Part shown: one piece after another, positions 1,961 to 24,022 of the stretch
Numbering within the stretch: position 1 is the first letter of the stretch
Layout: each line of letters opens with the position of its first letter
NCBI GenBank assembly: GCA_015680685.1
Contig: MNCI01001451.1
Coordinates: forward strand, 737,228 to 801,227
Source of the DNA: Gnetum montanum
Taxonomy: Eukaryota; Plantae; Gnetophyta
DNA: 64,000 bases
Direction of reading: 5' to 3'
Notes under the pieces: generated by a model
The model's input: the letters and a program-made list of their open reading frames with translations, nothing else
What the model was told of the DNA's origin: nothing
Database searches by the model: none
Program-made: the position numbers and the translations under genes

Positions 1961-2003
1961 TGGGGATGAAGGCACCTCCACGAACACATGGGGGTGCGCA
2001 GCC

Positions 2004-2261
2004 TTAGGGGTGGGTCGGCAAGTGACGGCAAGCGCATTGCGGACGTTCAAGCTCATGGAGCAGGTCCAAAGTGTTGCGATGCTCCTCAGTATCCATAAAG
2101 TTCGCCGCTTGTTGGATGCCTTGCATGGTGGATTCCCGCCTGCTCCGATCCGCCGGTGAGTCGCCCGCATCCGGATGATAACGTGTTGAGGTTCGTCGGA
2201 TTTGTCTCTGGAGCTCTCCCCAGGAGCTCTCACAACTAATACCAAGGATGAGGTAGGGGCA
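2004..2261 (-). other. DnaJ J-domain at C-terminus of LINE ORF2 (copy A)
   Basis: CPYLILGISCESSWGELQRQIRRTSTRYHPDAGDSPADRSRRESTMQGIQQAANFMDTEEHRNTLD. HPD codons at 2169-2177; fits the J-domain pattern PYxILG...YHPD...A...D...R..D. Confidence 0.8.
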
Positions 2262-4040
2262 TCGCCCCCCCTAAGCCACTGACGGGCACTGTGCTCGTGT
2301 GCCCGGTCAAGCTGTCTTTGTCTCTGCTCCTCCTTCTCTCGTAGGCACTCCTACTCCACTTTTTCCACCTCCTCTTGTGCTCTTCGGGCTGCGTCTTCCT
2401 GTCTCAACTCCTCTCTCACCTGGGCCTGGATTTCGTCAATGAGCCGGGCCCAAGCAGCCTCCGCCAGAAGCTCATGTTGTTGTAGCTGCTCCTGTTCCCA
2501 CTTGTGGAACTGGGCTTCCAGGTCAGCCCGAGACTGGGCAAGGGCCTCATTCCACTTGGCCTCCCACTCCCGCCTCTCCGCCCCCTGTGCACGCTGCTCG
2601 GCTTGTTGCAGCTCCTCAACCCAATTGGAGCGGTCGCTGGGGGGTCCGTCAGGGGGGAAACCATCCTGATAGTAGGGGGCGCGAGCTTCGTTGGGAGTGG
2701 CGTCCCCAAGCGAAGGCTATAGTTGTCGAAATCCAGTGAGTCTCTTGGCTGGTTGGGGCCGAGGGGGGAGGGGGGGCAGCAGAGGTGCCCCCCGAGGGGC
2801 AGATGATGACAGACTTAGCGCCCCCCAACCCCCCTCCACAGAGCCAGGATTAAGCCCGAATGCCAACCGTGTCGTTTGAGAAGAAGGACCTCTAGAAAAA
2901 AATGCAGGAGGTTAATCTAGAGGCCTAACTTCAGACATTGCATGAAGACAAAATGTAATCCTTGAAGTTTGGACGCATTGCCGAATTGAACGAAGAAACG
3001 GTCCACCAAATCAACCGTCCAGGCCCAGAGACGAGGGAGGGAAGATCTGGGAACCAGGTGGCTCTGCGTTCGTGGCACGGGTCCATTGAAAAAGAGCTCA
3101 GCGTCCTGTAGGCCTCGGGTGGTGGGCAGGACGATTTCTCCAACGGCCTGGGCCCCTAGGCAGCTGGCGATAGCTGACTCAGTGACGCGAATCTCGCATC
3201 CTTGGAAGAAGGTCCGATCGCAGTCCCAGTTTGCGAAAAATGCGTCGTCTGCCAGGTCTGGGTCGCCGACTAGCCGCTGCAACGGGCCAGACCAGCCACA
3301 CTTGGTAACCAGCCGCCAAAGCTCCTCATCATCCCGAAAGGCAGCGCAGTCAAGTTCGTACGTCGGCATGATACCCATGGTTGCTCTAATTTCGCTCCAT
3401 GCACGACACGTCAGAGCAATTATCCGCCGAGGGGAGGGGAGCCTATCCTGCTGGAAAACAGTGCGGTTGCACGTCTTCCAAGCGACCCATAAAAGCATTG
3501 ATGCCCAGGAGTCGCCTGTCAACTGTCTCAGGGGGGGCATCGCCGCTTCACGCCAGGTGTCGCACATGCAGGCGCATTCATAGATGAAATGCACGATTGT
3601 TTCTAGCGTGACGCCACAGCGAGGACACGTGTTGTCCTGCATGATGCCACGGCAATGCAGGATGGCGCATACAGGGAGTGCTTCAGACCATACCAGCCAT
3701 AAAAACATTTTGATTTTTTCTGGGAGCTGCCCGTGCCAAATCCACTGCCAACCGTCCTGTGGATATTTTTCTGATAGTAGGGCACGTGGCTCGAGGTGCA
3801 ACCAACCCTAGGTTACCATTGTTCGTGCGTGCTGACAGAGCGTTTGCCATGGGCACGAGGCACGTGTTCCAGCTTCCCACTGCGTGTATTTACTATTGAT
3901 GATGCGGGCCCACTGGCTCCGTTCCTCATGCCTGCGCATTAAACGGTGTAGGAGCCGTTGCTGCCCCAACATGATTTCGTCCTCAAAGGATGTAATGCCC
4001 AACCCCCCTACCTTATGAGGGCGCACAATGCGGGCCCAAT

Positions 4041-4352
4041 NNNNNNNNNNNNNNNNNNNNNNNNNNNNNNNNNNNNNNNNNNNNNNNNNNNNNNNNNNNN
4101 NNNNNNNNNNNNNNNNNNNNNNNNNNNNNNNNNNNNNNNNNNNNNNNNNNNNNNNNNNNNNNNNNNNNNNNNNNNNNNNNNNNNNNNNNNNNNNNNNNNN
4201 NNNNNNNNNNNNNNNNNNNNNNNNNNNNNNNNNNNNNNNNNNNNNNNNNNNNNNNNNNNNNNNNNNNNNNNNNNNNNNNNNNNNNNNNNNNNNNNNNNNN
4301 NNNNNNNNNNNNNNNNNNNNNNNNNNNNNNNNNNNNNNNNNNNNNNNNNNNN
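4041..4352. other. Assembly gap (312 N)
   Basis: Run of N next to a poly-C tract. Confidence 1.
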
Positions 4353-6790
4353 ACGAGGTGAAGCTTGCCCCCCCCCCCCCCCCCCCCAAATGAAGCTTCG
4401 GACCATTTTGTTGATCTGTTGAGTGATCGCAGTGGGGGGAGCGGCAACGGCCGCCACAAACTATGTGACAACCATGAGAATCCCAGTTGCCACCAGGAGG
4501 CGGCCCTTGCGTGTTAGGAAGCGATTGGCCCAGTGGTTCATCCGCTTTTCGACCTTAGCCATGAGTGGGCCCCACGAATTGTTCTGGCCCCACTGGAACA
4601 GTGGGATGCCCAAGTAGGTGTCTCCTGTGGTCCCAGGTTGGCTGTCTAGGATTTGCACTACTCTGTCCTTGACTTGTGCATCAACATTAATGAAATGCGC
4701 CACAGACTTAGTGTGGTTGATTTTCAATCCTAATTCTTCTGCCAGTCGGGTCAGGGCCATGTTAATAAAGCGTGCTTGTGGGGCCGCTGCCCGACTGAGC
4801 AACATAGTGTCATCGGCGTAATGTTCGGCTCGGCAGGCGACCCCAGCAATGTCCAAGCCTTCCACCCCGGGTGTGCTGCAGTAATATTGCATGAGATCCA
4901 TGGCAATGATGAAGAGTAGGGGCGAAAGTGGGTCACCTTGTCTTAACCCCCGACTAGGGGATGAGAAACCCCATAGTCGCCCCCCCCCCCCCACATCAAA
5001 AGAGAAACCGGCGGAGGACTGGATGTGCATACACAGTTGGATGAAACTGTGATCAAACCCTTTTTGATGCATAATGGTTTGCAAGGCTTCCTAACTGAGT
5101 GTATCATAGGCCTTAGTTATGTTAAGTTTGAGACATAGGCTAGGGAAGCCTGTAGTTCGGAGGGAGTGCAGCACCTCCTGCATGAGGAGAACCTGATCTT
5201 GGAGGGTCCTACCTTGCACAAAGCCAGCCTAATTGATTCCCACCAGTTTGGGTATAAGAGGCCCAAGCCGGTTGACTAGGAGCTTGGAGAAGATTCTGAT
5301 AAGGACATTGCAAACTCCAATGGGACGGAAGTGTTCCAGGCGGTGGGCGTCCAACTGCTTGGGGATGCATACGATTCGAGAGCAATTGAGTTCCCTTCGC
5401 ACTTGTCGCTTGGCTAACATGAGGTTGAACGCATCCAGGATATTGGGCCCCACAATATCCATAAAACTCTTGAAGAATTCAAGGGGCCAACCATTGGGTC
5501 CAGGCGCTTTCCCTCTCGGCATGCTATTGATGGTGGTAGTCAGTTCCAGCTAGGAAAAGGGGGCCATCAGTCGCCTATTGTCTACTTCGTGGAGCACCTT
5601 CTCCACGTGGACCGAGATGGGTTGAGTTGGCTGCTTGGTCCAAATGCTTCCCCAGTATTATGACAGCCCATTGGCTATCCCCTATGGGTCATCAATAACT
5701 TCACCTGTCTGGGTTCGGAAGCAACGGGCCTGGCTTTCACCACAGGTTTTGGCCATGGCAAAGAAGAATTTTGTCTGTCTGTCCCCTTCTCAGAGCCATC
5801 TGACCCAGGAGCGCTACCTCTAATATGTTTCCTTCTCCAAGTCAAGGTTCTGGAGTTGCCGTAGGAGACGCATCTCCTCCACATGCAAGTCCTCCCCAAT
5901 CTCCTGCCGTGCCTGGATTTGACCAAGCTGATCTCGGACCATCCTTTGACCAAATCTGAAAGAAAATTTCTCCTCCACTGAGAGGGCCCAGATGGCCCAC
6001 TTTAGATGAAGCAGGGCTTCTTTGAGGAAGTTTCGGGGGTCAACCTTGTCAGGTTGATAGTCAGCCAAGATATCCTCAACCAACGGCCGTAACCATGGTT
6101 TGGAGAGCCATGTGACCTCGAAACGGAAGGGGCCTAGGGCCTGGGGCTTATCCGTTCCGAAGGAACAGACCAGCGAGCAGTGGTCGAAGGCAACTCTTTC
6201 CTACCCCGTCACGTGCACAGTGGTGCGGAGGAGGAGATCGGAGCTGACCCAAACCCGATCGATGCAGGAGAGGATACGGTTTGACCCTTTTCGTCGATTA
6301 CTCCAGGTGAAGTGGCAGTTTTCAATGCGTAAGTCAACAAAGGAGTGAGTGGCCAGGAAATTGAGGAACTCCTAGGCACCCAAAGGTGGGGGGCAACTCC
6401 CCCAAACTTCTCCCAAGGGTGTAAGCGCTGGTTGAAGTCGCCCACTACCATCCAGGAATGATGGTCTGGCACCAACGGTGCCACCCAGTTCAGCTCCTGC
6501 ACTCGCAGCTCCCAAGCTTGCGCCCCGTAGAAGTTGGTCAGCCAGATTCCTTGGGCAGGAATCTTGATGGTGATGGCCCACGGTGAAGTGTCTACCAATC
6601 TCATGGTGTATCGTGCTAGGATGGCGAGACCCCCAGCCTTGCCCTGGCAGGGGTGCATCTGGGCATCCAAACCTTCCCATTTGAGAAGGTATGATTCTTC
6701 TGCCTGTAGCTTGGTCTCCTGGAAACAGACGATGTCACAGTTTTCTTCTTTAACAATCCGACGCAGGGTATTTCTTTTGTAGGGGGTACT

Positions 6791-8366
6791 TGTACTGTCT
6801 GAAATCGTCGGTCTCTGGCTAGAATGAAACAGAAACCTGGAGATCCCTGGACAAGCACAGAAGACCCTACCTTCGCTTGAGGGTAAGCTGGAATTAACGA
6901 AGGTAGAGTACCTTGAGTGGTCTACACGTGGATCAGACAAGGATTTTCCCGAACATACATCGATATACTGTACGATGGGTTATGCGTAAACGGCGTAATT
7001 AATGTAAAACGGAGTGTAAATGTACAGGAATGTAAACGACAAACATACAGTAATGAACGAAAACTGTAACAAATCTTAGCAAAAGAAATTTGGCAATATT
7101 ATTGCAAAACGGAAGGTTACAATGCACCGATCTAATGCAGTTGTGAATTTATCACAAGGCGGACGAAGAGCCCCCGTGGATGCGGAGAGATGAAAGTGTG
7201 TCAATTTGAACTGCAGGCACAGCGTGAAGGCTGTATGCTCAGCGTGCAGGGTTGAAGTCCAGCGTATAGGATGCAAGGTTCTGGATTTTCTCAGTGTGGG
7301 TTGCCCGAATTTTTGCCTAGATGCTTCTAATTTTTCCAACCCTGATCTGGTCAAAAGTTGGGGTTTTTATACAAGTTTAGACGTTGGACTTGGATCTAAG
7401 AGGGGATGATTGGCTGTGGAGTGCTGGACTCTTGGGTCTGGTGACATGTGGCGCGTTGACCGAGTGCGAAAGAATAAAATTTTACAAGTGTACAGCGAGC
7501 TGCACGCCAGCGTATACACGCTGGGCGTGTGAACTCGACGTACAGACTTGATTAAAACAAAAAAAGTCATTCGGCCTTCGGATTTGAATTCGGATGTCAC
7601 GAGAATGCTGCATGTGGATGTTCAGCTTGGTTGGCCTTGATCTGACATGATTCTGGAGAGCTTTGATTGGTATACGTTGTGCCACACACTGGGCGTACAC
7701 ATTGTACATGTTAGGCGTATACGCTAAGAGTACACATTGTACATGCTGGGTGTATACACTGGGCGTACACATTGTACATGCTGGGCATATACACTGGGCG
7801 TACAAGCTGGACGTACACATTGTACATGCTAGGTGTATATGCTGGGTGTACAAGATGTACATGCTGGGTGTATACGTTGAGCGTACACGATGTTCATACT
7901 CAGCGTATGAACTCCAAAGTGCATGATGTCGAGACCAAAATTCGACTTTCTAGAGCCCATGATGACACCTGATAATTGCTCTATTCCTGTGAGTTTATGC
8001 CTTGTACGAAATCTTACTCTAAAGTGTTGTTTTCATGCCGTCTTTGGGATCGCATGCTGGGCGTACACATCAGTCGTACGTGCTAAGTGTACATGTGAGG
8101 TGTGCACGCTGGGCGTGTATGCTGGGAGTGTACGCTGCATACTGCATACTTAGTGAAAACCCAGTATCTTGAGCTCCGAAGTTGCCATGTTTGATGCTAG
8201 ATGTCGCCGTGGTCATTTGCGGGTCCCAGGGAACCGTTTCTTGTTGAGTTCGACTATGCTTAAAGCTGTCTGTGGGGCCCTCAAGCTTCAATCATGTTGG
8301 GGAGCGTCATGACTTAGCTCGACTCTTGTTGAAAAAGTACTAAGCTCAGAATTTTGTGATGTTTCA
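6791..8366 (-). repeat. 3' LTR (about 1576 bp, TG...CA)
   Basis: Direct repeat of 24023-25501. Minus-strand ends TGAAAC...AGTACA; TATAAAA box near 7365; internal 'ctgggcgtacac' repeats at 7685-7890. Confidence 0.92.
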
Positions 8367-8380
8367 TTGGCCCCTCTTTG
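8367..8380 (-). promoter_or_regulatory. Polypurine tract
   Basis: Minus strand CAAAGAGGGGCCAA immediately precedes the TG of the 3' LTR. Confidence 0.75.
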
Positions 8381-9423
8381 TTGACGCTTGGAGGAATCAA
8401 CCCGAGAAGTGTCGACAAAGAAGTACAAAACACCATAAGCAACTTGGTAGAGACATTGTCCTTTGGCACCTGGCCAGACGTCATCGTACCATGTTCAGTA
8501 GTACATAGGATTGGAGAAATGAAATTTGTATTAGGTAGGGGAATGGGAACTGTAGGGATTGGTAACCAATCAAGGACTTGAGCATGGTGAAGGGGGTGTC
8601 CGAGTATGTGTGCGGGTCATGCTAATCTTTGTCAATAGCTATTGTTTAGCCATTTTTTAGCAGATTTGGGATCAAAACATGACGTGTACGTCCTTTGGTG
8701 GCACAAGACTCTTGTTTGGTGTTTAAGAGGACTTGTTGGCACAACCAAAGCCACGTGATGATGTGTTACGTTCTTTGGAGGAACAGGGCCTTTGTTTAGT
8801 GTTTAGAGGGAATTTGTTGGCGGAGAGCCAAAGCCATGCAATGAGATGTTACTTGATCGTTTGAGACATGAGCGTTTGTTTTCAAGACAACTGCCTTCCT
8901 GCTAAGGGCTTGGATGGGAAGGGCTGAGGTTTTTTTTGTTTTTTCTTTTTGCACATGCTCAAATGCCATGTTGTGGGTTACAACTGCTTAAGAGTGTTGC
9001 AGTGTGCAACAATGTGTTCAATGTTTCAGGCTGTACTGGGTGTGTCCGGGATGTAACTAAGTAGAATATGTTGAGGGATATGTGGGATATGTAACAGGAG
9101 ATGTACTAGTGAATGGCTTAATTAGTCTTGTCACATGTGTTATGAACAACGTCTTACCTTACTGCTGTGACGAAGTGCATTCTTGTACGAACACCTCTAA
9201 GTGTCATCCTGCAAACACAACTCCAAGAAGACAAGAAAACCATGAGTGAGTAAGCAAGCTTAGACTTGAACAGCTACTGATGAAACAAAAGCATCGGATG
9301 AGATTTTAGGCACTGTATATGAATAGCAGCAATGTTGTTAGGATCAGTTGATGGCGAGCAAGGCAGCGGCTTTGATGAAGTTTGAATGCAGCTACAGATC
9401 GGGAGGCTAGAGATGAAGTTGCC

Positions 9424-9717
9424 AGTTTATAGTCATAGCGGACTATTGTGGATAAGTTTTATGTCATGACCCATTGGACATTGCCCGTTTAGCGTCGTGG
9501 CGGACGGTACATTGCTAGTTTCTAGTCTTCGCGGACCGTGAAGAGGCAAACCAGTTTATAGTCTTAGCGAACTCTAGCGAATGAGACTATGGCAGTTTAA
9601 TGTCGTACCGGATGGGTGGTAGTTTATTGTCATTGCGGACATTCTGTGGTATCAGTTTATCGTCATGATGTCAGGACGAGCTGTGGTATCAATTTACCGT
9701 CATGATGCCAGGACGAG
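9424..9717. repeat. Array of about 9 degenerate AGTTTA+hairpin motifs (cluster A), just downstream of integrase
   Basis: Examples: agtttatagtcatagcggact, agtttattgtcattgcggaca, agtttatcgtcatgatgtcaggacga. Confidence 0.8.
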
Positions 9718-9719
9718 CA

Positions 9720-12700
9720 CGTACCTGAGTCCATACTCAAACGTGGAACGATTTCAAGAACAAATGGTTGGTCGAAATTGCAAACTCATTCCTTTCCATG
9801 TCAGCTAATTTGAATGCTTCGTTGTCGTACACTTTGGTGACCAAGTAGGGCCCTTCCCAATTGGCTAAAAATTTGTCCAAGTGTTCCCGAACGGCTTTGA
9901 GGACAAGGTCGCCTTCCTTGATAGGGCGCTTATGAACATCGTGTCGATGGCGTTGTCGTTGTCATTTTTGGTACCACTCAATCTGATCGAGCGCACGTAT
10001 ATGTTCCTCCTCCACCGAGTCCAAGTCAACAATGCATAGGTCATTGTTTCGCCCTTCGTCAAGGAGTCCAGAGAGTGTGATCCTTAAAGACAGTACCTGT
10101 AACTCCAAGGGTAAAACAACTTCTGAACCATAAACAAGACTATATGGCGTTTTACCTGTGGAAGTCTGATGCATAGTACGATAAGCCCACAGCACATATA
10201 CTAGCTGTTCGTGCCATCTTTTCTTACTTTGGGTAAGCATCTTTTTAAGTACTATAATGATAGTTTTATTTGTGGCTTCAACTTGTCCATTGCTCTGAGG
10301 GTAGTAAGGAAAAAAATGAATGTTTGATCCCTAGGCTTTCACAGAAAGTTCTGGTTTCGACACTGCTAAATTGTGGCTCGTTATCAGTGATGATGGTCAT
10401 GGGGATGCTAAAATGGGTCACAATGTTTTCGAGAATGAAGTTGCATATGTGTTTGGATGTGGTTTTTCTAAGGGGAATAACTTCTACCCACTTCGTGAAA
10501 TACTCTGTCGCAGTTATGATGAAGCTATGCCCTGAAGAAGATGAGGGTCTTATTGGCCCGATAAGATCTATCCCCACTTTTGGAAGGGCCAGGTGATTTG
10601 CGTTGTATGCAACTCATTTGGTGGAACATGTATCAGATTACTATGTTTTTGACAGATACTGCACGTTTTGGCCTTGGAGAGAGAATCATACTCCATGTGT
10701 GGCCAATAATAGCCCAAACATCTTATTTTCATTGCCATTGCTTTAGGTGCTATGTGCCCTCCGCATTGTCCATCATGTACTTGCTCGACGATGGTTTCGG
10801 CATCAGCGCTACTAACGCATGTTAACAGTATGCCTTCGTAGGATCGACGACACAACGTGTCCTCTACCAGTGCATATTGTTGAGAACGTTTTCATACTAC
10901 GTCCTTTTGTGCATTCGTTAGGTGTTGTGGTGTTTCACCGTGTATAAGGTACTCTTTTATGTCGTTATACCATTGTATTGCATGTGTTGTACTAACATAT
11001 GCAATCGGTAATTCATTAAGAGTATCAGTTATGGGTTTAGCACAACTGATTATAGAGCTAGGCAACATATGGAACATGTTTGGCGATATGTTTAGAGCTA
11101 GCGTGGCAAGTGCATCTGCAACAGTGTTATCGTTTCTAGAAACATGTTGCACGTCCATACTTTTGAATTGCTTTAGTAAGTGTTTAGCTAAATCACAGTA
11201 TGGTTGTAAATGTTGCGCTTTACATGTATAAACGTCTGTGACTTGGTTTAAAACTAGTTGTGAGTCTCCTCTAACTACAAGTCGTGTGATGTTGGAAGCT
11301 AATGCTACCGTAAGGCCCCTAAGGAGACCTTCATAGTTTGCTATGTTGTTGGTACAGTCAAAGTTGAAGCGGTAAGCAAAGGGTCGGATCTCCCCAGAGG
11401 GATAGGTGATGATGACGGCAGCACTTCCCCCTCAAGAGGTGGATGCTCCATCAAAGTTCAAAATGGCTTCGTACTCATCGGGAACTATGTCTATCGCGCT
11501 CACATTTTCGTCTGGAAACTCTGGCTCTATTGTTGCTTGATCATGTGTTGGTGATGTAGTCAAGTTGGTTTGCTATGGCTTGACCCTTGACTGATGACTG
11601 CGCTATGTAATGTAGGTCGAATTCAGCTATTATGGCTTTCCAACACGCTATTTTACTTGACTCGTAAATGTTACCGGTGACGGCCCTGAGCACATTATCT
11701 TTGTAGATTATGTTGGCTTGGTTATGGAAGAGGTAATGTCGCCATTTCTTTAGGGAAAAGACAAGGGCTAAACATGACCTCTCCACCTCGTTTTCGTGGG
11801 CCACTAATGCATGGCTCAAATAATAAACAGGGACTTCAGTTCCATCGTCTCGTTTCTGGTAGAGCATAGAAGCGATGGATGAATCCGANTGTCCGTCAAT
11901 TTTTCTATGAAACACCTGATGAACTGTAATCTACCTTGTAGATCCCGAAGTTCAGTAATGTTGCTTGGTGGTTTTAGATTGATGACAGCTTTAACCTTAT
12001 CTGGATCCACTTGTATTCCTGTTTCTGACACTACAAAGCCTAGCATCTTACCCGTTTTTACTCCGAAAACACATTTCTTTGGGTTGAGCCTAAGTTCATA
12101 TTTTAAGTAACGTTTTAGGATCAAATCTAAATCTTGGATGTGTTGCTTTGGTGTTTTTGATTTAATTGCGATGTCATCTACATAATCATTGAGCGAATGA
12201 AGTATGTAATCGCTAAAAATAAATGTCATTGCCCTTTGATATGTGGCCCCAGCATTCTTGAGACCGAATGGCATCATTGTGTAACAAAAGGTACCCCATT
12301 GTGTCATAAAGATAGTCCAGAGCTGATGTTTCGGGTTAATGCGTATCTGGTTATATCCTGAGAAGCCATCCATAAAAGATAAGAAGGCATGCCCAGCAGT
12401 TGAGTCAACAAGTTGATCGATGCTGGGTAGGGGGAAATCATCTTTTATGGTCGCAACGTTGAGGTCCCGAAAGTCAATGCATAGGCAAATGCTTCCGTTC
12501 TTCTTTGGGACCATGACCATGTTGGATACCCAATCAGCATAGTCAACAGCCCGAATGAAACCTGCCTGATAGAGTTTGGTGATCTCATTGCGAACTGCCA
12601 ACACTACCTCAGGCTTAACCTTTCATGCTTTTTGTTTCACTAGCCTTAATTTTGGATCGAGTATAATATTGTGCTGGACAATTCAAGGATCTAACCCAGA

Positions 12701-13045
12701 CATGTCAGTGTAAGACCAATCGAATGCTTTTATCTTGTCTTGAAGCACATGTTCTATGTCTCTAGCCAGTTGAGGTTGCAATAGTGTGCTCAATTTTAAT
12801 ACCTTAACTTCACCATCAGGCATAGTGATGGGGGTTTCAGTTAAAGGGTCTTCAGTGATGCTATCAGCTTCTATGTCGAGGGATTTTGTCATACCTTTGT
12901 AGCTGTCTAATGTTTGTTGTGTTGAGGCTATGACTGTGTCGTCAGTTGATGGACCTAAGTCGATGGAATTTATGTTGATTTCTCTTGTGATCTTTCCGTA
13001 TGGTCCATCGATGGTCAATGGTGTAAATAGATGCTAGTAATCCAT
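9720..13045 (-). pseudogene. pol: RT, RNase H, archaeal-type RNase H, integrase (disrupted)
   Basis: RT 11816-12604 (LCIDFRDLN, MPFGLKNAGATYQRAM, YVDD); RH about 11541-11900; aRH about 11090-11470 (NFDGAS, TNNIANYEGL, GDSQLV, HVSRNDNTVADALA); INT about 9720-10860 (HDGQCGGH, CSIC, WGIDLIGP, ITDN, NWEGPY). Confidence 0.93.
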
Positions 13046-13128
13046 CGAGCTTGCTCCTGCCAATAAACAGAGGGCAGAGTGAGTTAGTAGGGGTTGTTAA
13101 CGTAAATCATGTGTCTATATACGGTGGT

Positions 13129-13328
13129 AGTTTATCGTCGTATCTGGACGCATGGCAGTTTAAGGCCTTACCAGGCCGAATGTGGCAGTTTAAGGCCTTA
13201 CCGGGCCGAATGTGGCACTTTAAGGCCTTACCGGGCCGAATGTGGCAATTTAAGGCCTTACCAGGCCGTATGTGGTAGTTTAAGGCCTTACCGGGCCGTA
13301 TGTGGCAATTTAAGGCCTTACCGGGCCA
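13129..13328. repeat. 30-bp tandem repeat x6 plus one variant (hairpin cluster B)
   Basis: Unit tgtggcagtttaaggccttaccgggccgaa. Confidence 0.95.
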
Positions 13329-13528
13329 TTTAACTGTGTGTTGATGACGTCTAGTTGATGTATGATCTGTACTGAAGAGTTTGCGCCAAAATGTTCAGTG
13401 TGGGCAACCGCAATTGCATTGCCAGGGAATATGGTACATGGTAGTGTTCATTATCTGGTTATTTTGTTTTGCATTTTCTCGTACCTTGTACCTTGAATAA
13501 ATTTGATTAAATTTAATAAAATATTCAA

Positions 13529-13561
<33 letters not shown>

Positions 13562-13592
13562 AGCGGCAGCGGCGGCAGCGGCAGCGGCGGCG
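13529..13592. repeat. (GGC/AGC)n trinucleotide microsatellite
   Basis: ggcggcggc...gcagcggc run just left of a TATATA tract. Confidence 0.95.
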
Positions 13593-13605
13593 GGGTCAAC
13601 ATGGG

Positions 13606-13618
13606 CCTATATATATAC
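13606..13618. promoter_or_regulatory. Candidate internal (possibly bidirectional) TATA element
   Basis: cctatatatatac lies between the head-to-head RT frame (-) and the antisense gene (+). Confidence 0.4.
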
Positions 13619-13830
13619 TGGCAAGCATGAGTGTGAACCTGTCAGTTATTGAGGGCAGCGTAAACCTAAATCAAACCGCAGTGTGAGTGTAAACCTAAGT
13701 CGCAGCATGAGTGTAAACCTAAGTCGCAGCGTGAGCGTAAAGAACCAAACCCCAGCATGCAGGATTCAGCTCGGTGTACAGGATTAAACCCCAGCGTGAA
13801 CCTGTGAGATTTAGCGTACAGGACGTTGGA

Positions 13831-16800
13831 ATGGGCAAGGGCAAGGAGGTAGAAGGCTAGGGGAGGAAGGGGCCCGACTTGACCTTCGCGGAGGAAAGTG
13901 AGGCCATGCTGCAGTGTTTGCCTAGGCCTAGGATTTCATCATGGCCTGGATCAGTGCACAGGTAGGCTCTAATCTCACCTCAGTTAATTGCTTTCTGGGC
14001 GTACGGGATTTGCGCGAGGTCTTTGGTTGTATGTTTCGACGTGCAAGGACGAGGCTGAGCGTAGATAATTTTTGCAGCGTGCAGGGTCTGCATGCTGAGC
14101 GTAGACAATTTTTGCAGCGTGCAAGGTCTGCACGCTGAGCATAGATAATTTTTGCAGCGTGCAGGGTCTGCACGCTGAGCATAGACAATTTTGCAGTGTG
14201 CAGGGTTTGCACGCTAAGCGTAGATAGTTTTTGCAGCGTGCAAGGTCTGCACGCTAAGCGTAGACAATTTTTGCAGCGTGCAGGGTTTGCACGCTGAGCG
14301 TAGACAGTTTTTGCAGCATGCAAGGTCTGCACTCTGAGCGTAGATAATTTTTGCAGTGTGCAGGGTCTGCACGCTGAGCGTAGATAGTTTTTGCAGCATG
14401 CAGGGTCTGCACGCTGAGCGTAAATAGTTTTTGTAGCGTGCAAGGTCTACACGCTAAGCGTAAACAATCTTTGCAGCGTACAGGGGATGCACGCTGAGCG
14501 TAAACAGTTTTTCCAGCGTGCAGAGTCTATACGCTGAGTGTAAATAGTTTTTGCAGCGTGCAGAGTCTACACGCTGAGCGTAAACAATCTTCGCAGCGTA
14601 CAGGGGCTGCACACTAAGCGTAAACAGTTTTTGCAACATGCAGAGTCTGTACGCTGAGTGTAAACAGTTTTTGCAGTGTGTAGAGTCTGTACGCTGAGCA
14701 TAAACAGTTTTTGTAGCGTGCAAAGTCTGCACGCTGAGCGTAAATAGTTTTTGCAGCGTGTAGAGTCTGCACTCTGAGCGTAGACAGTTTTTGCAGCGTA
14801 CAAGGTCTGCACGCTGAACATAAATAGTTTGCAACTTTTCGAAGTATTGGCCCTCAATGTGGAACTTCGTTTCTTTATTTCATTTCCGTGTATAACTGAT
14901 TTACCATGGCATTTTGGTTATTTACAGGGATCCTGAGCCTTTCCTCTTAGTGGTTGAGTTGGTTAGGGTACTGGCCTGGTTCGGGCCCCTTGATACCAAC
15001 GAACCTACCCCTGATATGACTATTGATAACAATGGGGTATGGTTCAGGGAAGGAGCCTGTGAGTTCCTTGCCTTCATTTTAGATGGATTCAGGATAGTGA
15101 TATGGTCCCATCTAAGCGAACAAGTAGCGCGGAGCGTGCTTGAGGTAATGTTGCCAGGATCTTCAAACGGCGTCATGGCTTTCATGGTGGACATTGACGA
15201 GGGACTGCTTGCGATTGAGGACGGTCCCCCTGGAGGGCCCAGATCTACCCATCCGTTACTGTGCATATGGGACTTATTGCCACATGTCCCTCACTATCTC
15301 AATAGCACCTTATTTTTGGCTGCGCGTGCGCATACATTATTTCAGAATCCTCCGAGCACGGTGTACAGGGTGGAGAGGTAAGGTTGTTTAATTTGTCGTT
15401 TCTATTCTGTTGTTTAGTGTTTGCTCCCGTTCTGACAACCATTCTTTTGTAGGCCCCAAGTTGACAAAGATGGAATATGCATAAGTGATGACGGACTTGC
15501 ACTGGCTCACACCGCTTTAGAGACCTTCATGGCAGGTCCCACCCTCCGTGGAGCTGTATTAGCTAAGACTAAGGGTGACATCGTTCATTTTCATAAGCGA
15601 TTTTCCAAGGCGTTTGCGCAATGCGTGGCTCGAGGGTGGTTGCATGGAGATTGGTCACGCAATGGACCGATTTTCCCCTATGATACTGACTTGGGTCCTA
15701 GCAACGTGAATCCCACAACTGAAGGTAAGTGATGATATTTCTTTGACGCCTTAGTTTGTTTGTTCGGTTGCAACATTGGTCATACCGGTGCTATGGTTTT
15801 ACATTGTTTTTACAGTTAACATCCCCCTCGGCGGAGATCCTATTACGACAGGGCGGACTGAGAGCACCCTGTCGATGAAATTTGGGGAGGTCAGCAAGGT
15901 GCAGCGATGGTTGCGTACTAGTGCCCCACCATCTATTGTCCGTTGTTTGAATGATGCCAGCCTCATGGAGCTATTTACAACCCCAAGCTCTGATGTCTCT
16001 GTAGCTGAAATGATTGGAATTGTTGATTCGTTCGACAACTCTGTGACTTACTACAGCACCCGTATCAAGGGTGTCAAAATAGTTTTTCATCTGTCAGCCA
16101 ATTTCTTTTCAGACCTCTTCAATGTCCCAGCAGATGGTGTGAACGTGGTTTTGGACAGGGTGCAGAAAGAGCTCCATGTGGTACGTGAGCTAGAAGATTG
16201 GTTGGGCATTCTCAAGGGCTCTAAGGGGTTCCCTATGTAGGGAACATCAAAGGTGGTGGAAGTCAATGAACTATATCCCTTGTTTAGGGCACGGGTGTTT
16301 CCTAAATCCCTGTCTCAAGTGAAGAGTCTTGGGGTGGAAGCCGTGCGCATCATGCGGACCATTTTAGAGGCCGGGATGCGTTATAATTGGGCCTAATTTT
16401 TATTGTCGGGTTTCCATAGGGAGATAGTGCGGTTGCGTTCAAATGTTGAGGCACAGTCCCATTTTACTTTCACATTCTTTGCCGGTTATCTATGTCGCCT
16501 AGCCGAGTTTTTGGTGGTTCGTGCAGATAGCAAATATGTTTTTCGGGATCGTACTCAATTATCTCGCCCATGGATTAACCATTTGTTCAAGGTAGCTGAG
16601 TCTCAAGATGCACCCAAGGGGATCGATGAATCAATTTCCATCACAACAAAGGGGTCATCTAGTGCTTCAATCCATATACGTGATAGTGTGGGGTTGGAAC
16701 CAGACAATGTGCCCTACACTGTTAGGAGGGCTGATCGGGTGATCAAGGAGACCATCGAGAAAGCCAAATCGAAGATTTAGAAGCGCGAACGCCCTAAAGA

Positions 16801-18572
16801 GGTGGCCTCAACTGTGGAAGAGCCAAGGGTGAAGCGTATACGATTCAAAATGCCTACTTGAGGTAAGTCAACTTGATGCACTTGTTGTATTGCCATTATC
16901 GTCATTTTTGTCTTACTCATTTTTTTTTCCTTTTGACCATTTACATGAAACTAATGTCTTCAGACCTGACTCGGGAAGTGAGAAGATAGGAGCTAGAAAC
17001 GATTATCGATGAGGAGGAAGTCCCAACGGATTTAATTGAGGAGGAAGAGGTCGACAAAGATCAGGTGGAAGTGACCGAAGAGCTGGCAGAAGACACCATG
17101 GAGACAAAACTGGTCGATGACTGAGATGGTGTTGATGAAGTATTTAATAGCTTCCTTAAGGGAAGATTGGACCTTGGTGACCCTCCGAACCGGGAAGGGA
17201 ACAGAGAATCTGGTATATTTTCTTTTGTTTTATTGTGTTGCCTTGTGAATCATTTTTTCCATTATGTGGTGTTTTAATTTTATGTTTTTTTATCACTTCC
17301 AGATGAAGATATTAAAACTAGGACAATTCCTACCATGCGATTAGAAGTGCCTATGATAGTGGTTCCCCCTGAAACGACCACTAAGGCTAATCCATCTCGT
17401 ACTCATGAACCATTTACTTGGACCAAGATGCCAAGCAAAATGGATTTCGTCACCAGTATCGTCGACGAGGTGGTCGAACGCATTCAGCAAGCTCACCCTG
17501 AAATAGGTACAGACGTCTCAAGCATTTTGCTGCTTTCGAGTTTCACATTTTTTTTTGCCATCTAAGATCTAATGCCTGTTTTTTTCGTGTCGGTAGGGGC
17601 TAAACTGAACTGGGATCCGTTTGAGGCTGTTTGTATTGACAGCTTGCCTACACTACCGCCAGAAGTTAAACAGGTACCGAGACAAGTCTATGATGAGGTG
17701 GCGGAATCTCTTGTGCACAATGCCAAATCGCTTTGGACCTGTAGGTGCTCCATTGAACAGCTATGGTTGCAGATCCAGGCAAGGGAAAGAGAGGTTTTCA
17801 AGTTATTGGCTGAACGTGATGATCTCAAAGCTCGTTATGAGTTTGCCTCGGCCAGATTAACAGGTGATCGTTCTTGGCGAACTTCCGAGATCACTTATAC
17901 CAGGTATCAGAACTTGCTGAATCGCCATGCATCACTAACTCGAAAACTAGCAGAGCATAAGGCCTAGATAGATTTACTGAACCTCAAGTATCAGGATTGG
18001 AAGGCTTTTGCTTCCAAGGTGCGGAAGTGGGGTCAAGATGAGAAGAACCATAAGCATCATTACAAGAAGTCATTACAGGAAGTATCTATAGAGAAGCGTC
18101 AGCTTGAAATGTTCGTAGAGGGTCTAGGTCTACATTTTGCATTTGATACCTTTGCTAAAAATACCATTGTTGAGATGGAATCGCCCAAGAGGGTAATTAC
18201 AACTACTTCTGGGGAGGTCTCTGTGGGTGAATTTCTCTTGAAATGTCCCACATGGTCGGTGCTTGACAAAGGGAAGGCCTTAGCAAACGTCAATCTGGGC
18301 CTCGATGGGACTGACTGGGCTAGCGTCTCCGAGGAGGAAATTCTCCGTCAGTTGGAATTTGGTTTAGGGGGGTCTCCTATGGTAAGCAGTTTATGACTTT
18401 TTTTCGTTGAATAACTTTTGGGATTTTTCTCTTTTCTTCTTGTGTTGATTGTTTCTTTTGCTTTTTATAGGGTCGAGGCGACGACAATGTTCAAGAAGGT
18501 GGCCCCAGCGGAGCGGGGACCCTTGGTGTCGGAGAGTCTGAAGGGGACAGCCCTCCCGTCCCTGATGTTTAG
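13831..18572 (+). pseudogene. Retrotransposon-borne antisense 8-exon gene (FCP1/NIF-like + Transposase_32/PMD-like + acidic/NLS + coiled coil), about 1080 codons, with premature stops
   Basis: Exons 13831-13961, 14928-15377, 15453-15724, 15816-16862, 16964-17212, 17303-17506, 17597-18381, 18471-18572. All 7 introns are GT-AG and phase-compatible; total 3240 nt, no frameshift, about 8 in-frame stops. Confidence 0.8.
14053..14832. repeat. About 40-bp minisatellite, about 19 copies, inside intron 1 of the antisense gene
   Basis: Unit close to gctgagcgtagacagtttttgcagcgtgcagggtctgcac. Confidence 0.95.
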
Positions 18573-18987
18573 TTTTGATTTTGAAACTATCTTGGCTCAT
18601 AATTTTACATGAATCGTAAACTGAATGTTTTGCCCTGGGTTGTATTGAACTAGTGAATGGAATCAGTTAACTGTTGTACTTGTCTAACTGTATATGACTA
18701 CATATATATATATATATATATTTGTATTTATTTTTTTTATATTTTTTTTTGGCTCTTGTTATTTAAACATAAACACGATGTGGCAATGTAAAATGTTTTG
18801 GTTTGTTTTGTTGTTTAAGTATAATGCACGGAGTGGGAATGCAAGTAGAAATGTAATTATAATCAAAGGATAATTGTGAAAAGGAAAATGTGAAAAAAAA
18901 GCTATTATTGATAACATGAGAATATAAGCATAAATTCGAACAATGAACTTGAATTTGTGAGAAAAAAAAAGTGTAAGCAAATGGTTT

Positions 18988-19188
18988 AGTTTAAGGCCAT
19001 TTCAGGCCCCATGCACTAGTTTAAGGCCATTTCAGGCCATGTGTAAACAAGGGAAGTTTCAAGTGACGCTGGTGGATTTCTTGATAGACCGACCATTTCT
19101 GATCGTGGCTAGTTTTATGTCGTTGCGAATATATGATAGTTTAATGTTGTTTCGGACTGTGAATATAGTTTAACGTCGTTTCGGACTT
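18988..19188. repeat. AGTTTA+hairpin motif cluster C, just downstream of the gag-PR stop
   Basis: agtttaaggccatttcaggcc x2, agtttaatgttgtttcggact, agtttaacgtcgtttcggact. Confidence 0.75.
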
Positions 19189-19197
19189 TAATGTCAT

Positions 19198-22100
19198 TTA
19201 TTGGCTTAGTAATTTTTTAATTTTCCTCATTTTAACATTAGGAGTAGCGTTAACGGGTATGATTCTATATTCAGCGTCTTCTTCACTTATCACGTTGAAC
19301 GGTAATTTGGCCCAAGGGATGTCTGACGGAACAATTCCCGCGTTAGTGCTTTCTGGTGTTTCTGCATGTACTGTAGTTTCTACGTTTGTTGTAGTTTCTA
19401 GGTGAGGCTGTATATGTACAATTTCAGGCTCGAGTATTTCTGTGTTGGGTAAATTTTTCTTTGCGTTTAATAGATTATTGCTTATTGGTTGCGTGTATCT
19501 TTGTTGTTCATTTGTATCATCTTGTTTAGGCTCTTCGAACTTAACCTCTAACCCTTGGTCTGTATCTGTATGTGATGAGATGGTAGGTGTAGCAGCCTCC
19601 CCGTGTATAATGATTTCGCCACCTTCGTAAGGTAGGTGAATCTCTTGGTGTATGGGGGAAGAGACTGCTTTTAGTTGGGCTAACCAGGGCCTTCCCAATA
19701 TTAAATTGAACCCTGGCATTTCATCAATGACCACAAAGTCGGCAAATGTGGGGAATTGGCCTCCTGCTATAAAGTCCAAAGTCACAGTGCCTTTTACTAC
19801 TATGTGTGATCCATTGAACGATTTCAAACATGTGGTGGCGGTTGGTCTAATTAGTTCCGTAAGCCCTAATTGTTCGACGATGGGATAGGGTATTACGTTT
19901 GTAGCGGCTCTGTCATCTACATGCACTCTATGTATTTTGAATTGATTTACCCGTATTGTTATGAACATAGGTGCAGTTGTCACTTTTCCTGTTTTCTCAT
20001 CCATTTTGATGTTGTCATTGTGGAAACCTAGTGACTTAGGAGTCAATCCTTGAGGCGAATACATTACCGCATGAATTGAAGGTTCATTTGGAGGTAAGTC
20101 CTCGCTTACTAGGATGGATGTCAACATGCGTACTAGGGCTTTACGGTGGGTTTGAGAAGTTAACACCAGGTCGTATAAGCTTAATGAAGTGTTTTTCTGT
20201 TTAAGCGCATGCGTGACCTGTGTTAGAGCTGTCGCTAGATCTTTACTATTGGGGGTATGTTTGTCGATAGTCATTTGGTCCATCGGGCCCAACAGTTTTA
20301 TCTCATGCGTAGTTGGTTTATCATTTTTATCCGTAGTCGCTGATCTAGACGTATCGTGCTTTCCAGATGATTCACCCTCATAGCCTGTGTTTGATTTATT
20401 GTTAGGTGATGTCATGGGTATTGCACTTAACTGGGTGGGCTTGGGAGGCCTAAGGCTAGTCGTTGACGTTCCTTCTCCAAGCGTTCCCATGTAAGCTTGT
20501 CTGCTAGGCGTTCTCGTGTGTGGTGTGGGGGAACAGTCGGTTTCGAAATCTCAAGTTGCTTTGGAATCTATACAACGTATGGAGTAGGGCGGGGTTGCGG
20601 TTGGACGGTTGAATGCGGTTGAGTGTCAGGCTGCCTAGGCACCTTAACAACATAGGGGGTCGGTCTATTTTGTGTTTGCGGAGTGGAGGATTGGTGGTCA
20701 TCAGAGCGTTCGGGTATCCTAACAACATACGGAGTTGGTCTAGCTGGGGGTTGTACCTCCATAGTTGCGACCGCAGGTGGCACTCGGACTACGTAGGGAG
20801 CAGGCAAGGTAAGAGGTGATTGTGTGTTTGCGGTAGTAGTGGCGGGAGGTACATGCACCACGTATGGTTTTTCATGTGGTGGTATGATAGAAGTTGCTAC
20901 TGCCGGGGGTATTCGGATGACATAAGGCTTTTGCGGGGAGTATGATGGTTGAGGCACAGGTGTTTGTACAGTGGGAGGAATCTGCACTACAAATGGTCTC
21001 TTAGGCATTTGCTGGTCATGATCGGAATGGATGGTGTTAATCCTAGGTGTTACCGATTCATTATCGAAGTAGATGGTGTTAATTACATATGGTGCTTCTT
21101 TAGTATTTAGAGGATCTTTATATACGTCCATGGCCTGGTTTTGCGATTGGACCGGGTTGGCTTCATCAAAAGTGATTTGACCTCTGTCGATCATCTGTTG
21201 GATATCTTGTTTTAGGGTGAAACAATAATCAGTGCCATGCCCATTACGTTGATGATAATCACAAAAACGGTCCATTCTAAAGCCCTTTGAAACCAGGGGT
21301 TCATCTAGTGTTGCCAGGCTTGGGTTCTGAACCAATTGATAAAACCGATCATGTCTTTGGATTGTTGTGGGGGACAATTATTTATGTTTCATCAGTCCAG
21401 CCTTCAAGAGTTGGTCGAATAATTGCGAGGGTTTCATGGGCAATGGCATATATTGAGAGGGGTCCTTCCTCTCAAAGTTTCTCACGCGACCCGGTGTAGG
21501 ATTTTGTGATGTGGATGATTCGGGCGCAGACGCAAGAGCTGGTCTAGCATAATTAGTAGGGGCAGCAGGCGGTTTACCTTGTTGTCCCGCATTCGCTTGT
21601 TGTGTTTCCGCTACTGCTGCTATAGTTGTTTTAGCCTTTTCTTTGTCTTTCTTATTGTGTTGGTTTTTAAAGGCTGAATAGGCAGGGTCGTGGCTGTTTT
21701 GGGCTACCTCCTCTATGTTCTTGATTTGTACAAATGCCTGACTAAGAGTGCGTGCATTGAGATAATATAATTTGGACTTAACAAAATGATTAATAGCCCC
21801 TTTTAGGATGGTGAGGAGATACTTCTCCAGGATTGGCTCTTGGAGCTTATTGAGGGCAGCACTCCACCATTGAATAAATTTTTGGACAGGTTCAAGCAGT
21901 GCTTGCTTGACCTGTATGAGGTTGTCAAGTGTTGCTTCAGGCTTCAAGTTATACTTGAACCTGGTAACGAATTGGTGTAACAAATCTTCTAGAGAAGATA
22001 TTGAGTTTCGTGGCAAGGCCAGATACCAATCAAGTGCTCTCCCTGTGAGGGACATGGGGAACACTCACAGAATGGCATGTGGCCATGCTTGAAGTAGCAC

Positions 22101-23372
22101 GCATTCTAATCTAAACGTTATAAGGTGAGCATTGGGGTCTGTCTCCCCATTGTATTTAGTCAGCGTGGGTAAGGAAACACCCTTAGGTAGTGTTAGAGGC
22201 AGAACCGAAGAGCTGATAGGGTCATCGTGATAGAAGTCCACTACCTTAAGCTCTCCGTCTATGGCTGTTTTGAGGCATTTGACCTCGTCAGTTAGCTCCT
22301 GCATTAGCTTTTTGGCATCAGCCTAGTCTTGGGCACTAGGTGAGATAGTAGGTTGATGATGTTGTACAGTATACAAATTAGACTATTGGACAGTGGGCTG
22401 GAAGGAAGAAAGTTGTGTGGTTGGAGGTTGCGCTTGTGGAATATTTGTGGCAGGTGGCACTAGGGGTGGCACATTGTAGGTAAGGAATTGCTGCTATTGT
22501 TGTGGTTGTACTTGAGGGATGTTAGCAGGTAAAATTGTATGAGGCGGTATGTTATAGTGAGGGGGTTGATACGATTGAGCACCAATCGCAGCCCATTGCC
22601 CGGTCGTGCTTTGTGTTGGGACACTATGAACTTGTTGAGTTACAGTGGTGAAAGGGGCTTCTTGGGTTTGGATCCGTGGTATATAATGAGCAGATGTAGA
22701 AGCTGATATCACATGCGGCATCCCGATCACTCTGGGTGGGAAGGTTACTCCTACATTATTTTGAGGAGGTTGTATTTGCGAGAATGGGGATACTGTTGCA
22801 ACGGGGGGAATAGTAAGGGGAAGTGTGTTGAGTTGCGTATCGGTTACAGGAGGAATAGGGATAAGCGTGGATGGTTCCTATTGAGGTGTCTGTGCTTGGG
22901 TGATTTGAAATAACAGGTTTACATAGGTTTGTGGGCTGAGGGTATGATACGAATCTTCGTGCTCGGACTGAGCTGCAAAGTCATCCTCCTCTTCCAATTG
23001 AGGATTTGCCACAGACTGGTCCAGAAACTGATTCCTTAGTAGGAGGAGCTGTGAGATGAGCTCAAAGTAGTGCTCTGGGAGAGGGATGATATCATAAGGA
23101 GAAGGAATGAACTCATGTCCTCCCCTATGAAAGAGTTCGTATTGTCTCTTAACCTCCATTTCGATTTGATCTACAGCTAGGCCGGCTTGTATTTTTACGC
23201 ATATGAAATTGTATTGCTCCTGGGTTATTATGTTAAATGATGGGTTCCTCCCTTGTAATCTGAGAGACCGGTGAGGCCCTGCCGTGGGTTGTACTACGGG
23301 TTGTTGAACGGCCATGGGGCCTACGATATCTATGATGGGCTTGGTTGAAGTGTTGGGGTTCGCAGTGTTCAT
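19198..23372 (-). pseudogene. gag-protease of the Tat element (disrupted)
   Basis: Retrotrans_gag-like (KYNGETDPNAHL, FPMSLTGRALDWY), Cys/His box FCDYHQRNGHGTDYC, protease region (RVHVDDRAATNVI...LILGRPWL). In-frame stops separate the ORF-track pieces. Confidence 0.88.
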
Positions 23373-23446
23373 GATGAATGGTTGTGAATATAACACAGTG
23401 GAAGGGATATGAAACTGGTATACTTATCAGAGCATACACCTAAGTT

Positions 23447-23855
23447 CGCAGCGTACAGCGTATAGACTGGATCTCAGCGTATAGGCTTCAACGACCAGTG
23501 TACAGAGACAACATACAGCGTACAGGTAGGCTGAGCAGCATGTAGACAGAGTCTACAATGTACAACGTAGACTGAGCAGCGTGTAGACAGGGTCTACAGC
23601 GTATAGCATACAGGTAGGCTGAGCAGCGTGTAGACAAGGTCTACAACGTACAGCGTAGACTGATCAGCATGTAGACAGGGTCTACAGTGTACAGCATACA
23701 GGTAGGCTAAGCAACGTGTAGACAGGGACTACAGCGTACAACGTAGATTGAGCAGCGTGTAGACAAGGTCTACAACGTACAGTGTACAAGTAGGCTGAGC
23801 AGCGTGTAGACAGGGTCTGCAGTGTATAGCGTAGACTGAGCAGCTTGTAGACGCT
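23447..23855. repeat. Degenerate tandem repeat (about 40-48-bp units) in the element's 5' UTR
   Basis: Recurrent gctgagcagcgtgtagacagggtctacagcgtaca. Confidence 0.9.
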
Positions 23856-24000
23856 GGGAATTCTATAGAATAGGGTGCAAATCCGAGGAGTTCAGAAACC
23901 AGTTTAATGTTGGGGCAATGTGAATCTGGGAGAAACAGAGTACCAATCTGAAGTGCGAAGGTGCATGTATGAGATCAGAGTAGGTTTAAACAATTTTAGG

Positions 24001-24017
24001 CCCTCCTTCTAGCACCA
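24001..24017 (-). promoter_or_regulatory. Primer-binding site, tRNA-Asn(GUU)
   Basis: Minus strand TGGTGCTAGAAGGAGGG, 5 nt after the LTR end. Complementary (1 mismatch) to the plant tRNA-Asn 3' end ...CCCUCCUUCUAGCGCCA, recalled from memory. Confidence 0.85.
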
Positions 24018-24022
24018 TTTTC

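Follow-up and report, generated by a model that had tools for sequence, protein, structure and literature searches.

The window analysed here, a 64,000-nucleotide (nt) stretch of the Gnetum montanum contig MNCI01001451.1, carries on its minus strand a decayed long interspersed nuclear element (LINE) of the plant L1 clade, referred to as copy A, with a predicted DnaJ-type J-domain at its coding 3' end. Four more copies (B, C, D and E) were found by tblastn with pieces of copy A and by reciprocal searches within the window. We conclude that L1-clade lineages probably acquired a module composed of a linker, a helical stretch and a J-domain behind the end of their second open reading frame (ORF2), most likely as a C-terminal extension of the ORF2 protein (ORF2p) that recruits Hsp70. 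All parts named in the initial annotation, which had been made from the sequence alone, were located on the minus strand in copy A, including the globular domain that follows the zf-RVT zinc finger, the Pro-rich linker, the E/Q/R-rich stretch and the J-domain (Table 1). The annotation had also described a frame running on for about 500 codons after zf-RVT. This holds for the length (~516 codons) but not for the continuity, as these codons are spread over three frames instead of one and include four in-frame stops (2917-2919, 2815-2817 in the ORF2 frame, ~2717-2719 and 2351-2353).

The piece of copy A that reads CPYLILGI...RYHPD...LD matches the Pfam DnaJ profile (PF00226) over profile positions 2-63 of 63 with a score of 30.8 bits (E=3.2e-7), above the gathering cut-off of 27.8 bits, as the initial annotation had anticipated in proposing this comparison. 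The corresponding match in copy C is partial (23 bits) and covers the half of the domain upstream of an internal stop codon. The His-Pro-Asp (HPD) tripeptide is found in all three copies that reach this region, at 2169-2177 in copy A and at exactly the codons given earlier for copies B (40407-40415) and C (42501-42509), and direct reading finds helix II rich in Arg and Lys in each of them. The best matches of the copy A piece among solved structures are J-domains. An AlphaFold2 (AF2) model of the domain, of low confidence, shows the four helices I-IV and places HPD in the loop that links helices II and III (residues 17-30 and 39-58). When this model was used in a Foldseek search, nearly all of the top ~45 matches were J-domain entries, at probabilities reaching 0.99; the best E-value was 0.056. 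A conserved Trp in the helix I-II region, together with the sequence context of helix II and HPD, is particular to the LINE copies. Judged from profile, solved-structure and model comparisons, we regard the assignment of this predicted domain as a genuine J-domain as sound.

The J-domain is supported as belonging to the mobile unit, because copy B begins inside it, sequencing depth over copy A is biased toward the 3' end, and the similarity among family members ends at its stop codon. This agrees with the earlier suggestion that the domain is mobilised with the element. We aligned contigs from three DNA runs with the same species label, as well as oligo-dT RNA reads, to positions 1900-4040, requiring a match of at least 85%, and obtained between 2243 and 4015 matching contig pieces per DNA run. 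The summed depth reaches ~14000 over the J-domain, ~4000 over the helical part and ~600-4400 over the zinc finger and globular domain, while the flank has ~10; the linker has the lowest depth within the element. Such a 3' bias is the outcome expected from LINE 5' truncation. Family similarity ends at ~2002, only a few bases from the stop codon of the J-domain, where loose contig ends accumulate and depth drops from ~700 to ~10. Copies B and C have the ~275-nt 3' untranslated region (UTR) and the terminal run of seven to eight A directly past the J-domain that had been noted before. The claim that both hold the same J-domain stands with regard to the intact HPD, yet they have a TAG inside the domain in common and copy B starts only in the middle of it. 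A one-off 3' transduction, proposed initially as a possible refutation, is excluded, as the two deeply diverged lineages of A and C both carry the module and the matching read pieces number in the thousands. Near-identical words from parts of copy A were also found in runs labelled as five other organisms.

Conservation between the two lineages is seen at the protein level. Copies A and C share only a single 35-nt match in their DNA, yet at the protein level their extensions can be aligned collinearly, beginning with the G-rich first part of the linker and ending on a stop codon that both have in the same place, and their J-domains match each other in tblastn with E=8e-14. Motifs common to both are QVREEL in the helical stretch, QWL..G.CPY..LGI, the Trp, YHPD and LD of the J-domain, and C.C..LP.H. 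in the tail. Because the DNA is saturated while the protein remains collinear to a common stop, we take the module to be kept by selection, in line with the initial reading of copy A as divergent but constrained. For copies B and C, the true frame gives a ratio of nonsynonymous to synonymous differences (pN/pS) of 0.39 (P=0.004), compared with 0.60 and 0.71 in the shifted frames. Four of the six best-supported differences between copy A and its family in the J-domain are synonymous. These substitution counts are small, though all of them point in the same direction. Two of the breaks in copy A are absent from most family copies. The TAG at 2351-2353 reads CAG in ~92% of the depth (2353 A>G), and other family copies have one extra base at the G7 run at 2265-2271 (an insertion behind 2264), which brings coiled coil and J-domain into a common frame and gives ..QWLRGGRCPY.. 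uninterrupted. The extra base is seen in insertion rows and in the consensus of loose ends (2265 and 2270), in contigs as well as RNA reads. Retention of the module as coding sequence by selection is supported by these observations.

The element is a plant L1-clade LINE. Its ORF2 has the domains of plant L1, with Exo_endo_phos at 47.1 bits, RVT_1 at 42.2 bits and zf-RVT at 52.6 (copy A) or 61.3 bits (copy C). The first open reading frame (ORF1) contains a DUF4283 domain (32.1 bits) and a directly read CCHC-like motif, and the combination of DUF4283 with zf-CCHC is typical of plant L1 ORF1 (PMC5203782), on which the clade assignment is based. A retrotransposition signature is also present in the A-run 3' end that copies B and C share between unrelated flanks and in the 3'-biased depth over copy A; target-site duplications were not established for the LINE copies. 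Copy B, 83% identical to C and ending at the same A-run, is an independent 5'-truncated insertion, and a segmental duplication of the two copies was ruled out since their flanks are unrelated.

The module comprises ~330-390 codons, which specify in turn a variable linker rich in Pro and Gly, a helical stretch rich in E, Q and R, and the J-domain at the C-terminus. It is mobilised together with the element, of which it forms the 3' end, and has been retained as coding sequence. In the mechanism that we propose, its translation as an extension of ORF2p may be achieved by an in-frame fusion in active master copies, or by recoding at the old stop codon and the homopolymers. A C-terminal extension is the most likely form because the module of copy A does not have its own start codon, and an independently initiated ORF3 is unlikely because Met is absent from the 212 codons preceding the J-domain in this copy. 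J-domains are known to dock ATP-state Hsp70 through HPD and a basic helix II, which triggers ATP hydrolysis. The HPD loop and basic helix II of the LINE domain could dock host Hsp70 in the same manner, and the long helical spacer may allow Hsp70 to be loaded in cis on nascent ORF2p or on the LINE ribonucleoprotein particle (RNP). The ORF2 proteins of LINEs are big, present in small amounts and difficult to fold, and it is suspected that host chaperones aid the replication of retroelements. Hsp70 loaded in this way would help a very large protein with many domains to fold, to assemble, to be remodelled or to reach the nucleus. The module likely goes back to a host mRNA for a protein with a C-terminal J-domain, of which the 3' portion was captured. 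This fits with a module that extends nearly to the 3' terminus of the element. The identity, position, mobilisation, abundance and conservation of the domain are shown by the data, while its translation as a fusion, the recruitment of Hsp70, a role against silencing and any advantage for the element are inferred.

Several results weigh against a straightforward ORF2p extension. The codon directly past the ..LW that closes the globular domain is TAG in copies C (with an 87-nt insertion set aside) and E, TAA in copy D and AGG in copy A. Because the homologous codon is a stop in C, D and E, an older end of ORF2 can be placed right after the globular domain, and the J module is situated behind this ancestral stop. 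The extension of A, like that of C, lies in the -1 frame with respect to ORF2, so the initial description of an ORF2 that ends in a J-domain is valid for the location of the module at the coding 3' end of the element but has to be amended for the older stop in front of it and for the frame. No copy in the window has an uninterrupted frame from ORF2 to the J-domain, and no insertions or deletions at the junction G-runs were seen in at least 10% of the aligned contigs. The TAG inside the J-domains of B and C (DDERL*VE) suggests that their immediate master may have had a truncated domain and may already have been defective. Confidence in the AF2 models is low, with a predicted local distance difference test (pLDDT) score of 61 for the J-domain and 61.8 for the globular domain, the latter built from a seven-row alignment of sequences in the window. 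A word-indexed protein search with the J-domain piece returned zero candidates, retrieving neither intact relatives nor a donor gene. Matching RNA records amount to 668 of 12.6 million, come equally from both strands and represent mostly diverged copies, which shows diffuse transcription of the family and not a functional product.

The junction itself is rich in G-runs, reading G6-TT-G6 in copy A and TAG-GGGG-TGT-GGGGG in copy C, and in both copies 15 nt separate the Trp codon from the far end of the second run. Another G6 run at 2788-2793 in the linker varies in length within the family. It has one extra base in ~40% of the low depth at this position in runs X1 and X3 and none in X2, and +C or +CC occurs behind 2787 in single low-depth contigs of X1 and X3. 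The additional base at 2788-2793 therefore provides an in-frame route into the extension. Homopolymer lengths in the assembly are doubtful, as illustrated by the sole single-copy contig bridging the 3' flank of copy A, which comes from an independent DNA run and has +AAC behind 1929 and +G in the G-run behind 1989; these differences are either polymorphism or homopolymer assembly error.

It is possible, although we put this forward tentatively, that the module is a regulated second product made by read-through of UAG-G, by slippage of the polymerase or ribosome on the G-runs, or from a separate ORF3, so that short and long forms of ORF2p would arise in a gag-pol-like manner. The presence of a stop at this same codon position in copies C, D and E speaks for such regulation, and so do the G-runs at the junction, the equal 15-nt spacing and -1 offset that A and C maintain despite saturation of their DNA, and the lack of junction indels among family contigs. 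However, copy A has AGG and no stop at that codon, while in copy C the stop precedes the G-run, so slippage there could not rescue translation. A programmed -1 ribosomal frameshift was set aside, since a slippery heptamer upstream of the stop is not conserved between A and C. Two decayed copies would have an offset in common by chance in about 1 in 8 cases, the assembled homopolymer lengths are unreliable as seen at 1989, the extra base at 2788-2793 opens an in-frame path without recoding, and a conserved Met for an independent ORF3 is absent. A more specific version, a retrotransposon-encoded Hsp70 co-chaperone with its dose set by recoding at UAG-G and the G-runs, in which a short ORF2p would be made beside a rarer long one whose coiled coil and J-domain bring Hsp70 to the RNP, appears unlikely to us. 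If true, it would combine gag-pol-like expression with the hijacking of chaperones, strategies for which non-LTR elements have so far no description.

We consider it very unlikely that the J-domain acts on chromatin by imitating host J-proteins of methylation-reader or remodeller complexes, thereby blunting silencing or promoting transcription. Plant proteins that could serve as precedents do exist, with the J-domain protein SLN acting together with MBD5/6 (PMC10651127) and J-domain proteins acting with PKL (bioRxiv 10.64898/2026.09.14.751395), and the adjoining globular domain has a weak, feature-level likeness to transposon-encoded Transposase_32 and ATHILA ORF1. On the other hand, sequence evidence tying the LINE J-domain to those host proteins is absent, a close homologue was not found, and the assignment of the globular domain failed in Pfam, fold and profile comparisons. 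Least probable of all is a passenger role, in which the module would be the 3' portion of an mRNA for a host J-protein with a C-terminal J-domain, gained through template switching or 3' transduction and of no use to the element. Its location behind the ancestral stop and near the element end, to within ~50 nt in copy A and ~280 nt in copy C, is what mRNA 3' capture would produce, lineages D and E manage without it, and the J-domains of B and C have the same premature TAG. Nevertheless, the frame, motifs and stop position of the module are kept in A and C across saturated DNA, pN/pS is reported as below 1 in the true frame only (with the shifted frames at the values given above), and the stops and frameshift of copy A are absent from most family copies. 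Family similarity also ends exactly at the stop of the J-domain reading frame and not at the element end. The module may well have originated by capture, but its conservation is at odds with neutral carriage.

The globular domain that precedes the older ORF2 stop is kept in copies A, C, D and E, with C, D and E having 35-58% amino acid identity to A. Pfam searches with its pieces gave nothing meaningful at E <= 10, a phmmer search against 1.84 billion representative sequences gave only a chance ankyrin-repeat match, and Foldseek with its AF2 model gave zero matches. Its nearest language-model neighbours in the ESM Atlas are Transposase_32 and ATHILA ORF1 clusters (score 0.88), which we treat as a lead only. 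Membership in the PMD/Transposase_32/ATHILA ORF1 superfamily is not supported by any significant profile or fold match; the likeness consists of these clusters and the motif '..I.vt...Ia..LG....GE.V', while the difference lies in the missing Pfam, fold and profile support. One accessory reading frame of the long terminal repeat (LTR) retrotransposon that interrupts copy A contains a motif (..F.dLFnVPadG..) similar to the globular domain of the LINE. A domain shared between the LINE and the accessory frames of the LTR element was not accepted, as the profile comparisons were not significant (E=0.078 and 0.31).

Literature searches returned no report of a J-domain in LINEs or any other retrotransposon, in agreement with the novelty suggested by the initial annotation, and neither 'DnaJ' nor 'J-domain' appears in the main text of a published L1 survey (PMC5203782). 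Extension of ORF2 at its C-terminus does have precedents. A plant L1 subclade is described as having gained an archaeal-like RNase H at this position (Smyshlyaev et al. 2013, as cited in PMC5718144). The Gnetum element resembles plant L1-clade LINEs in its backbone domains, 5' truncation, A-rich tail and the addition of a module at the C-terminal end of ORF2, but in contrast to those with RNase H it has a globular domain followed by a coiled coil and a J-domain, the latter two behind an older ORF2 stop. Insect R1/TRAS LINEs carry an extra C-terminal superfamily 1 (SF1) helicase in ORF2 (PMC4686597, PMC5563155). In both cases the ORF2 C-terminus is extended by a captured foreign domain that is kept across lineages, while the host kingdom, LINE clade and activity differ, with a viral helicase in insects and an Hsp70 co-chaperone domain here. 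Other retrotransposons have captured DNMT, MBD or demethylase domains (PMC5890265, PMC6673714, PMC9289625).

Among selfish elements encoding their own HPD-bearing J-domain, a parallel in kind is offered by the T antigens of polyomaviruses, although homology beyond the J-fold is not implied. The large and small T antigens of these viruses have a J-domain with HPD that harnesses host Hsc70 for replication proteins. Theirs is N-terminal and belongs to an animal DNA virus, whereas that of the LINE is C-terminal, past a coiled coil, and belongs to a plant non-LTR element. Host class III (type C) J-proteins such as the auxilin-like proteins include members with a C-terminal J-domain. The LINE module is like them in having the J-domain as its sole chaperone module, placed C-terminally after a lengthy region that is helical or disordered and without a G/F or zinc-finger client-binding domain. 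It is different in that a specific host relative was not found and in features specific to the LINE copies, namely the context of helix II and HPD and the Trp in helix I-II.

An element equipped with a J-domain would be a natural experiment, suggesting that a retrotransposon can be limited by its recruitment of Hsp70, and a co-chaperone would, if this reading is true, join the short list of domains captured by LINEs, which includes RNase H, helicase, esterase and others. The module is concrete and can be assayed by comparing HPD with QPD, and sister lineages with and without it in one genome permit a direct comparison of their success. Due to the high abundance of the family, stray 'DnaJ' matches found here or in the genomes of relatives may be tails of LINEs instead of genes, which is of relevance for annotation.

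Table 1. Features of the LINE copies and the inserted LTR retrotransposon, in window coordinates
Feature	Position	Strand	Evidence or remark
Copy A, 5' part: ORF1 and probable ORF2 start (Met ~25515)	25502..26600	-	Pfam, direct reading
Copy A, ORF1 DUF4283	26011-26289	-	Pfam 32.1 bits, cut-off 27.2
Copy A, ORF1 CCHC-like knuckle	~25640-25690	-	Read directly; no Pfam match
LTR retrotransposon, 18.7 kb, inside copy A, not part of the LINE	6791..25501	+	LTRs 6791-8339 and 24023-25501
Copy A, apurinic-type endonuclease (EN)	6212..6790	-	Exo_endo_phos 47.1 bits
Copy A, reverse transcriptase (RT), split over several frames	4464..5549	-	RVT_1 42.2 bits
Copy A, N run (assembly gap) after RT	4041-4352		
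Copy A, zf-RVT	3553-3771	-	PF13966 52.6 bits
Copy A, post-zf region and globular domain, last residues ...GLILALW	2836..3552	-	Trp codon 2836-2838
Copy A, junction: AGG 2833-2835, then G6-TT-G6 homopolymers	2821..2835	-	Read directly
Copy A, Pro/Gly-rich variable linker	2650..2820	-	In places given as ~2650-2835
Copy A, E/Q/R/A-rich helical, coiled-coil-like stretch	2272..2649	-	In places given as 2272-2716
Copy A, G7 run, frame change between coiled coil and J-domain	2265..2271	-	
Copy A, predicted J-domain	2064..2258	-	HPD 2169-2177; Pfam, solved structures, model
Copy A, conserved C-terminal tail (LD..H..C.C..LP.H.)	2004..2063	-	Stop codon 2004-2006
Copy B, 5'-truncated, starts inside J-domain	39960..40484	-	HPD 40407-40415, 3' UTR, A8 run
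Copy C, 5'-truncated in RT	42056..44818	-	RT 44441-44818; zf-RVT 43845-44060
Copy C, globular domain	43049-43841	-	Holds 87-nt insertion; TAG directly past LW at 43046-43048
Copy C, coiled coil	~42603-43000	-	
Copy C, J-domain	42336-42602	-	HPD 42501-42509
Copy C, stop codon	42330-42332	-	Followed by ~275-nt 3' UTR
Copy C, A7 run	42056-42062	-	
Copy D: EN, RT, zf, globular domain	50037..53426	+	Ends ..LLLAFR, TAA 53424-53426, short A-rich tail
Copy E: RT end, zf, globular domain	54481..55960	+	Ends ..LILALW, TAG 55913-55915, A-rich tail

The longest open stretches of copy A follow the order of its parts. A run of 296 codons without a stop (2920-3807) carries zf-RVT onward into the further domain, and the TAG at 2917-2919 is the single in-frame stop of the globular region. 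The helical stretch is open for 121 codons at 2354-2716 and continues to 2272 past the in-frame TAG at 2351-2353, and the last 88 codons without a stop (2007-2270) contain the J-domain. The order of RT, zf-RVT, globular domain, linker, coiled coil and J-domain is the same in copy C. In copies D and E, neither a coiled coil nor a J-domain follows the globular domain. Lineages A, C, D and E are roughly equidistant, with 32-58% amino acid identity between pairs, an even spacing that favours no particular order of gain or loss.

The 87-nt in-frame insertion in copy C (43049-43135, minus strand) lies between ..GLILAL and LW-TAG and has CTCT at both sides. It holds an ATG with a favourable context (GCCATGG) that is in frame with the extension; copy A does not share this. 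The A-rich tail of copy D adjoins a fragment similar to the RT and RNase H of Ty1/copia elements (53430-53540, plus strand), and copy D was either inserted into a copia element or truncated by one.

The LTR retrotransposon cuts off the 5' part of copy A from the remainder and sits between ORF1 and EN, with the LINE reading frame resuming in the N-terminus of EN beyond the insertion. Since it was inserted within copy A, the LINE copy is older than this insertion. Its two LTRs (~1.5 kb) are 85.5% identical over 1562 nt, and a clean 5-bp target-site duplication is not evident at its junctions. In the 5' part of copy A, zero stops occur between the CCHC knuckle of ORF1 and the probable ORF2 Met (25640-25515, minus strand; ..SHLMTTTSP..), and ORF1 and ORF2 share one frame in this decayed copy. 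The accessory reading frames of the LTR element (14914-15378 and 15776-18393, plus strand) have a weak match to NIF/FCP1-like phosphatases (19.5 bits, under the cut-off). Tandem repeats at 7400-9400 and 13900-14900, in the LTR and the internal region, yield long repetitive pseudo-ORFs (..LHAAKTVYAQRA..).

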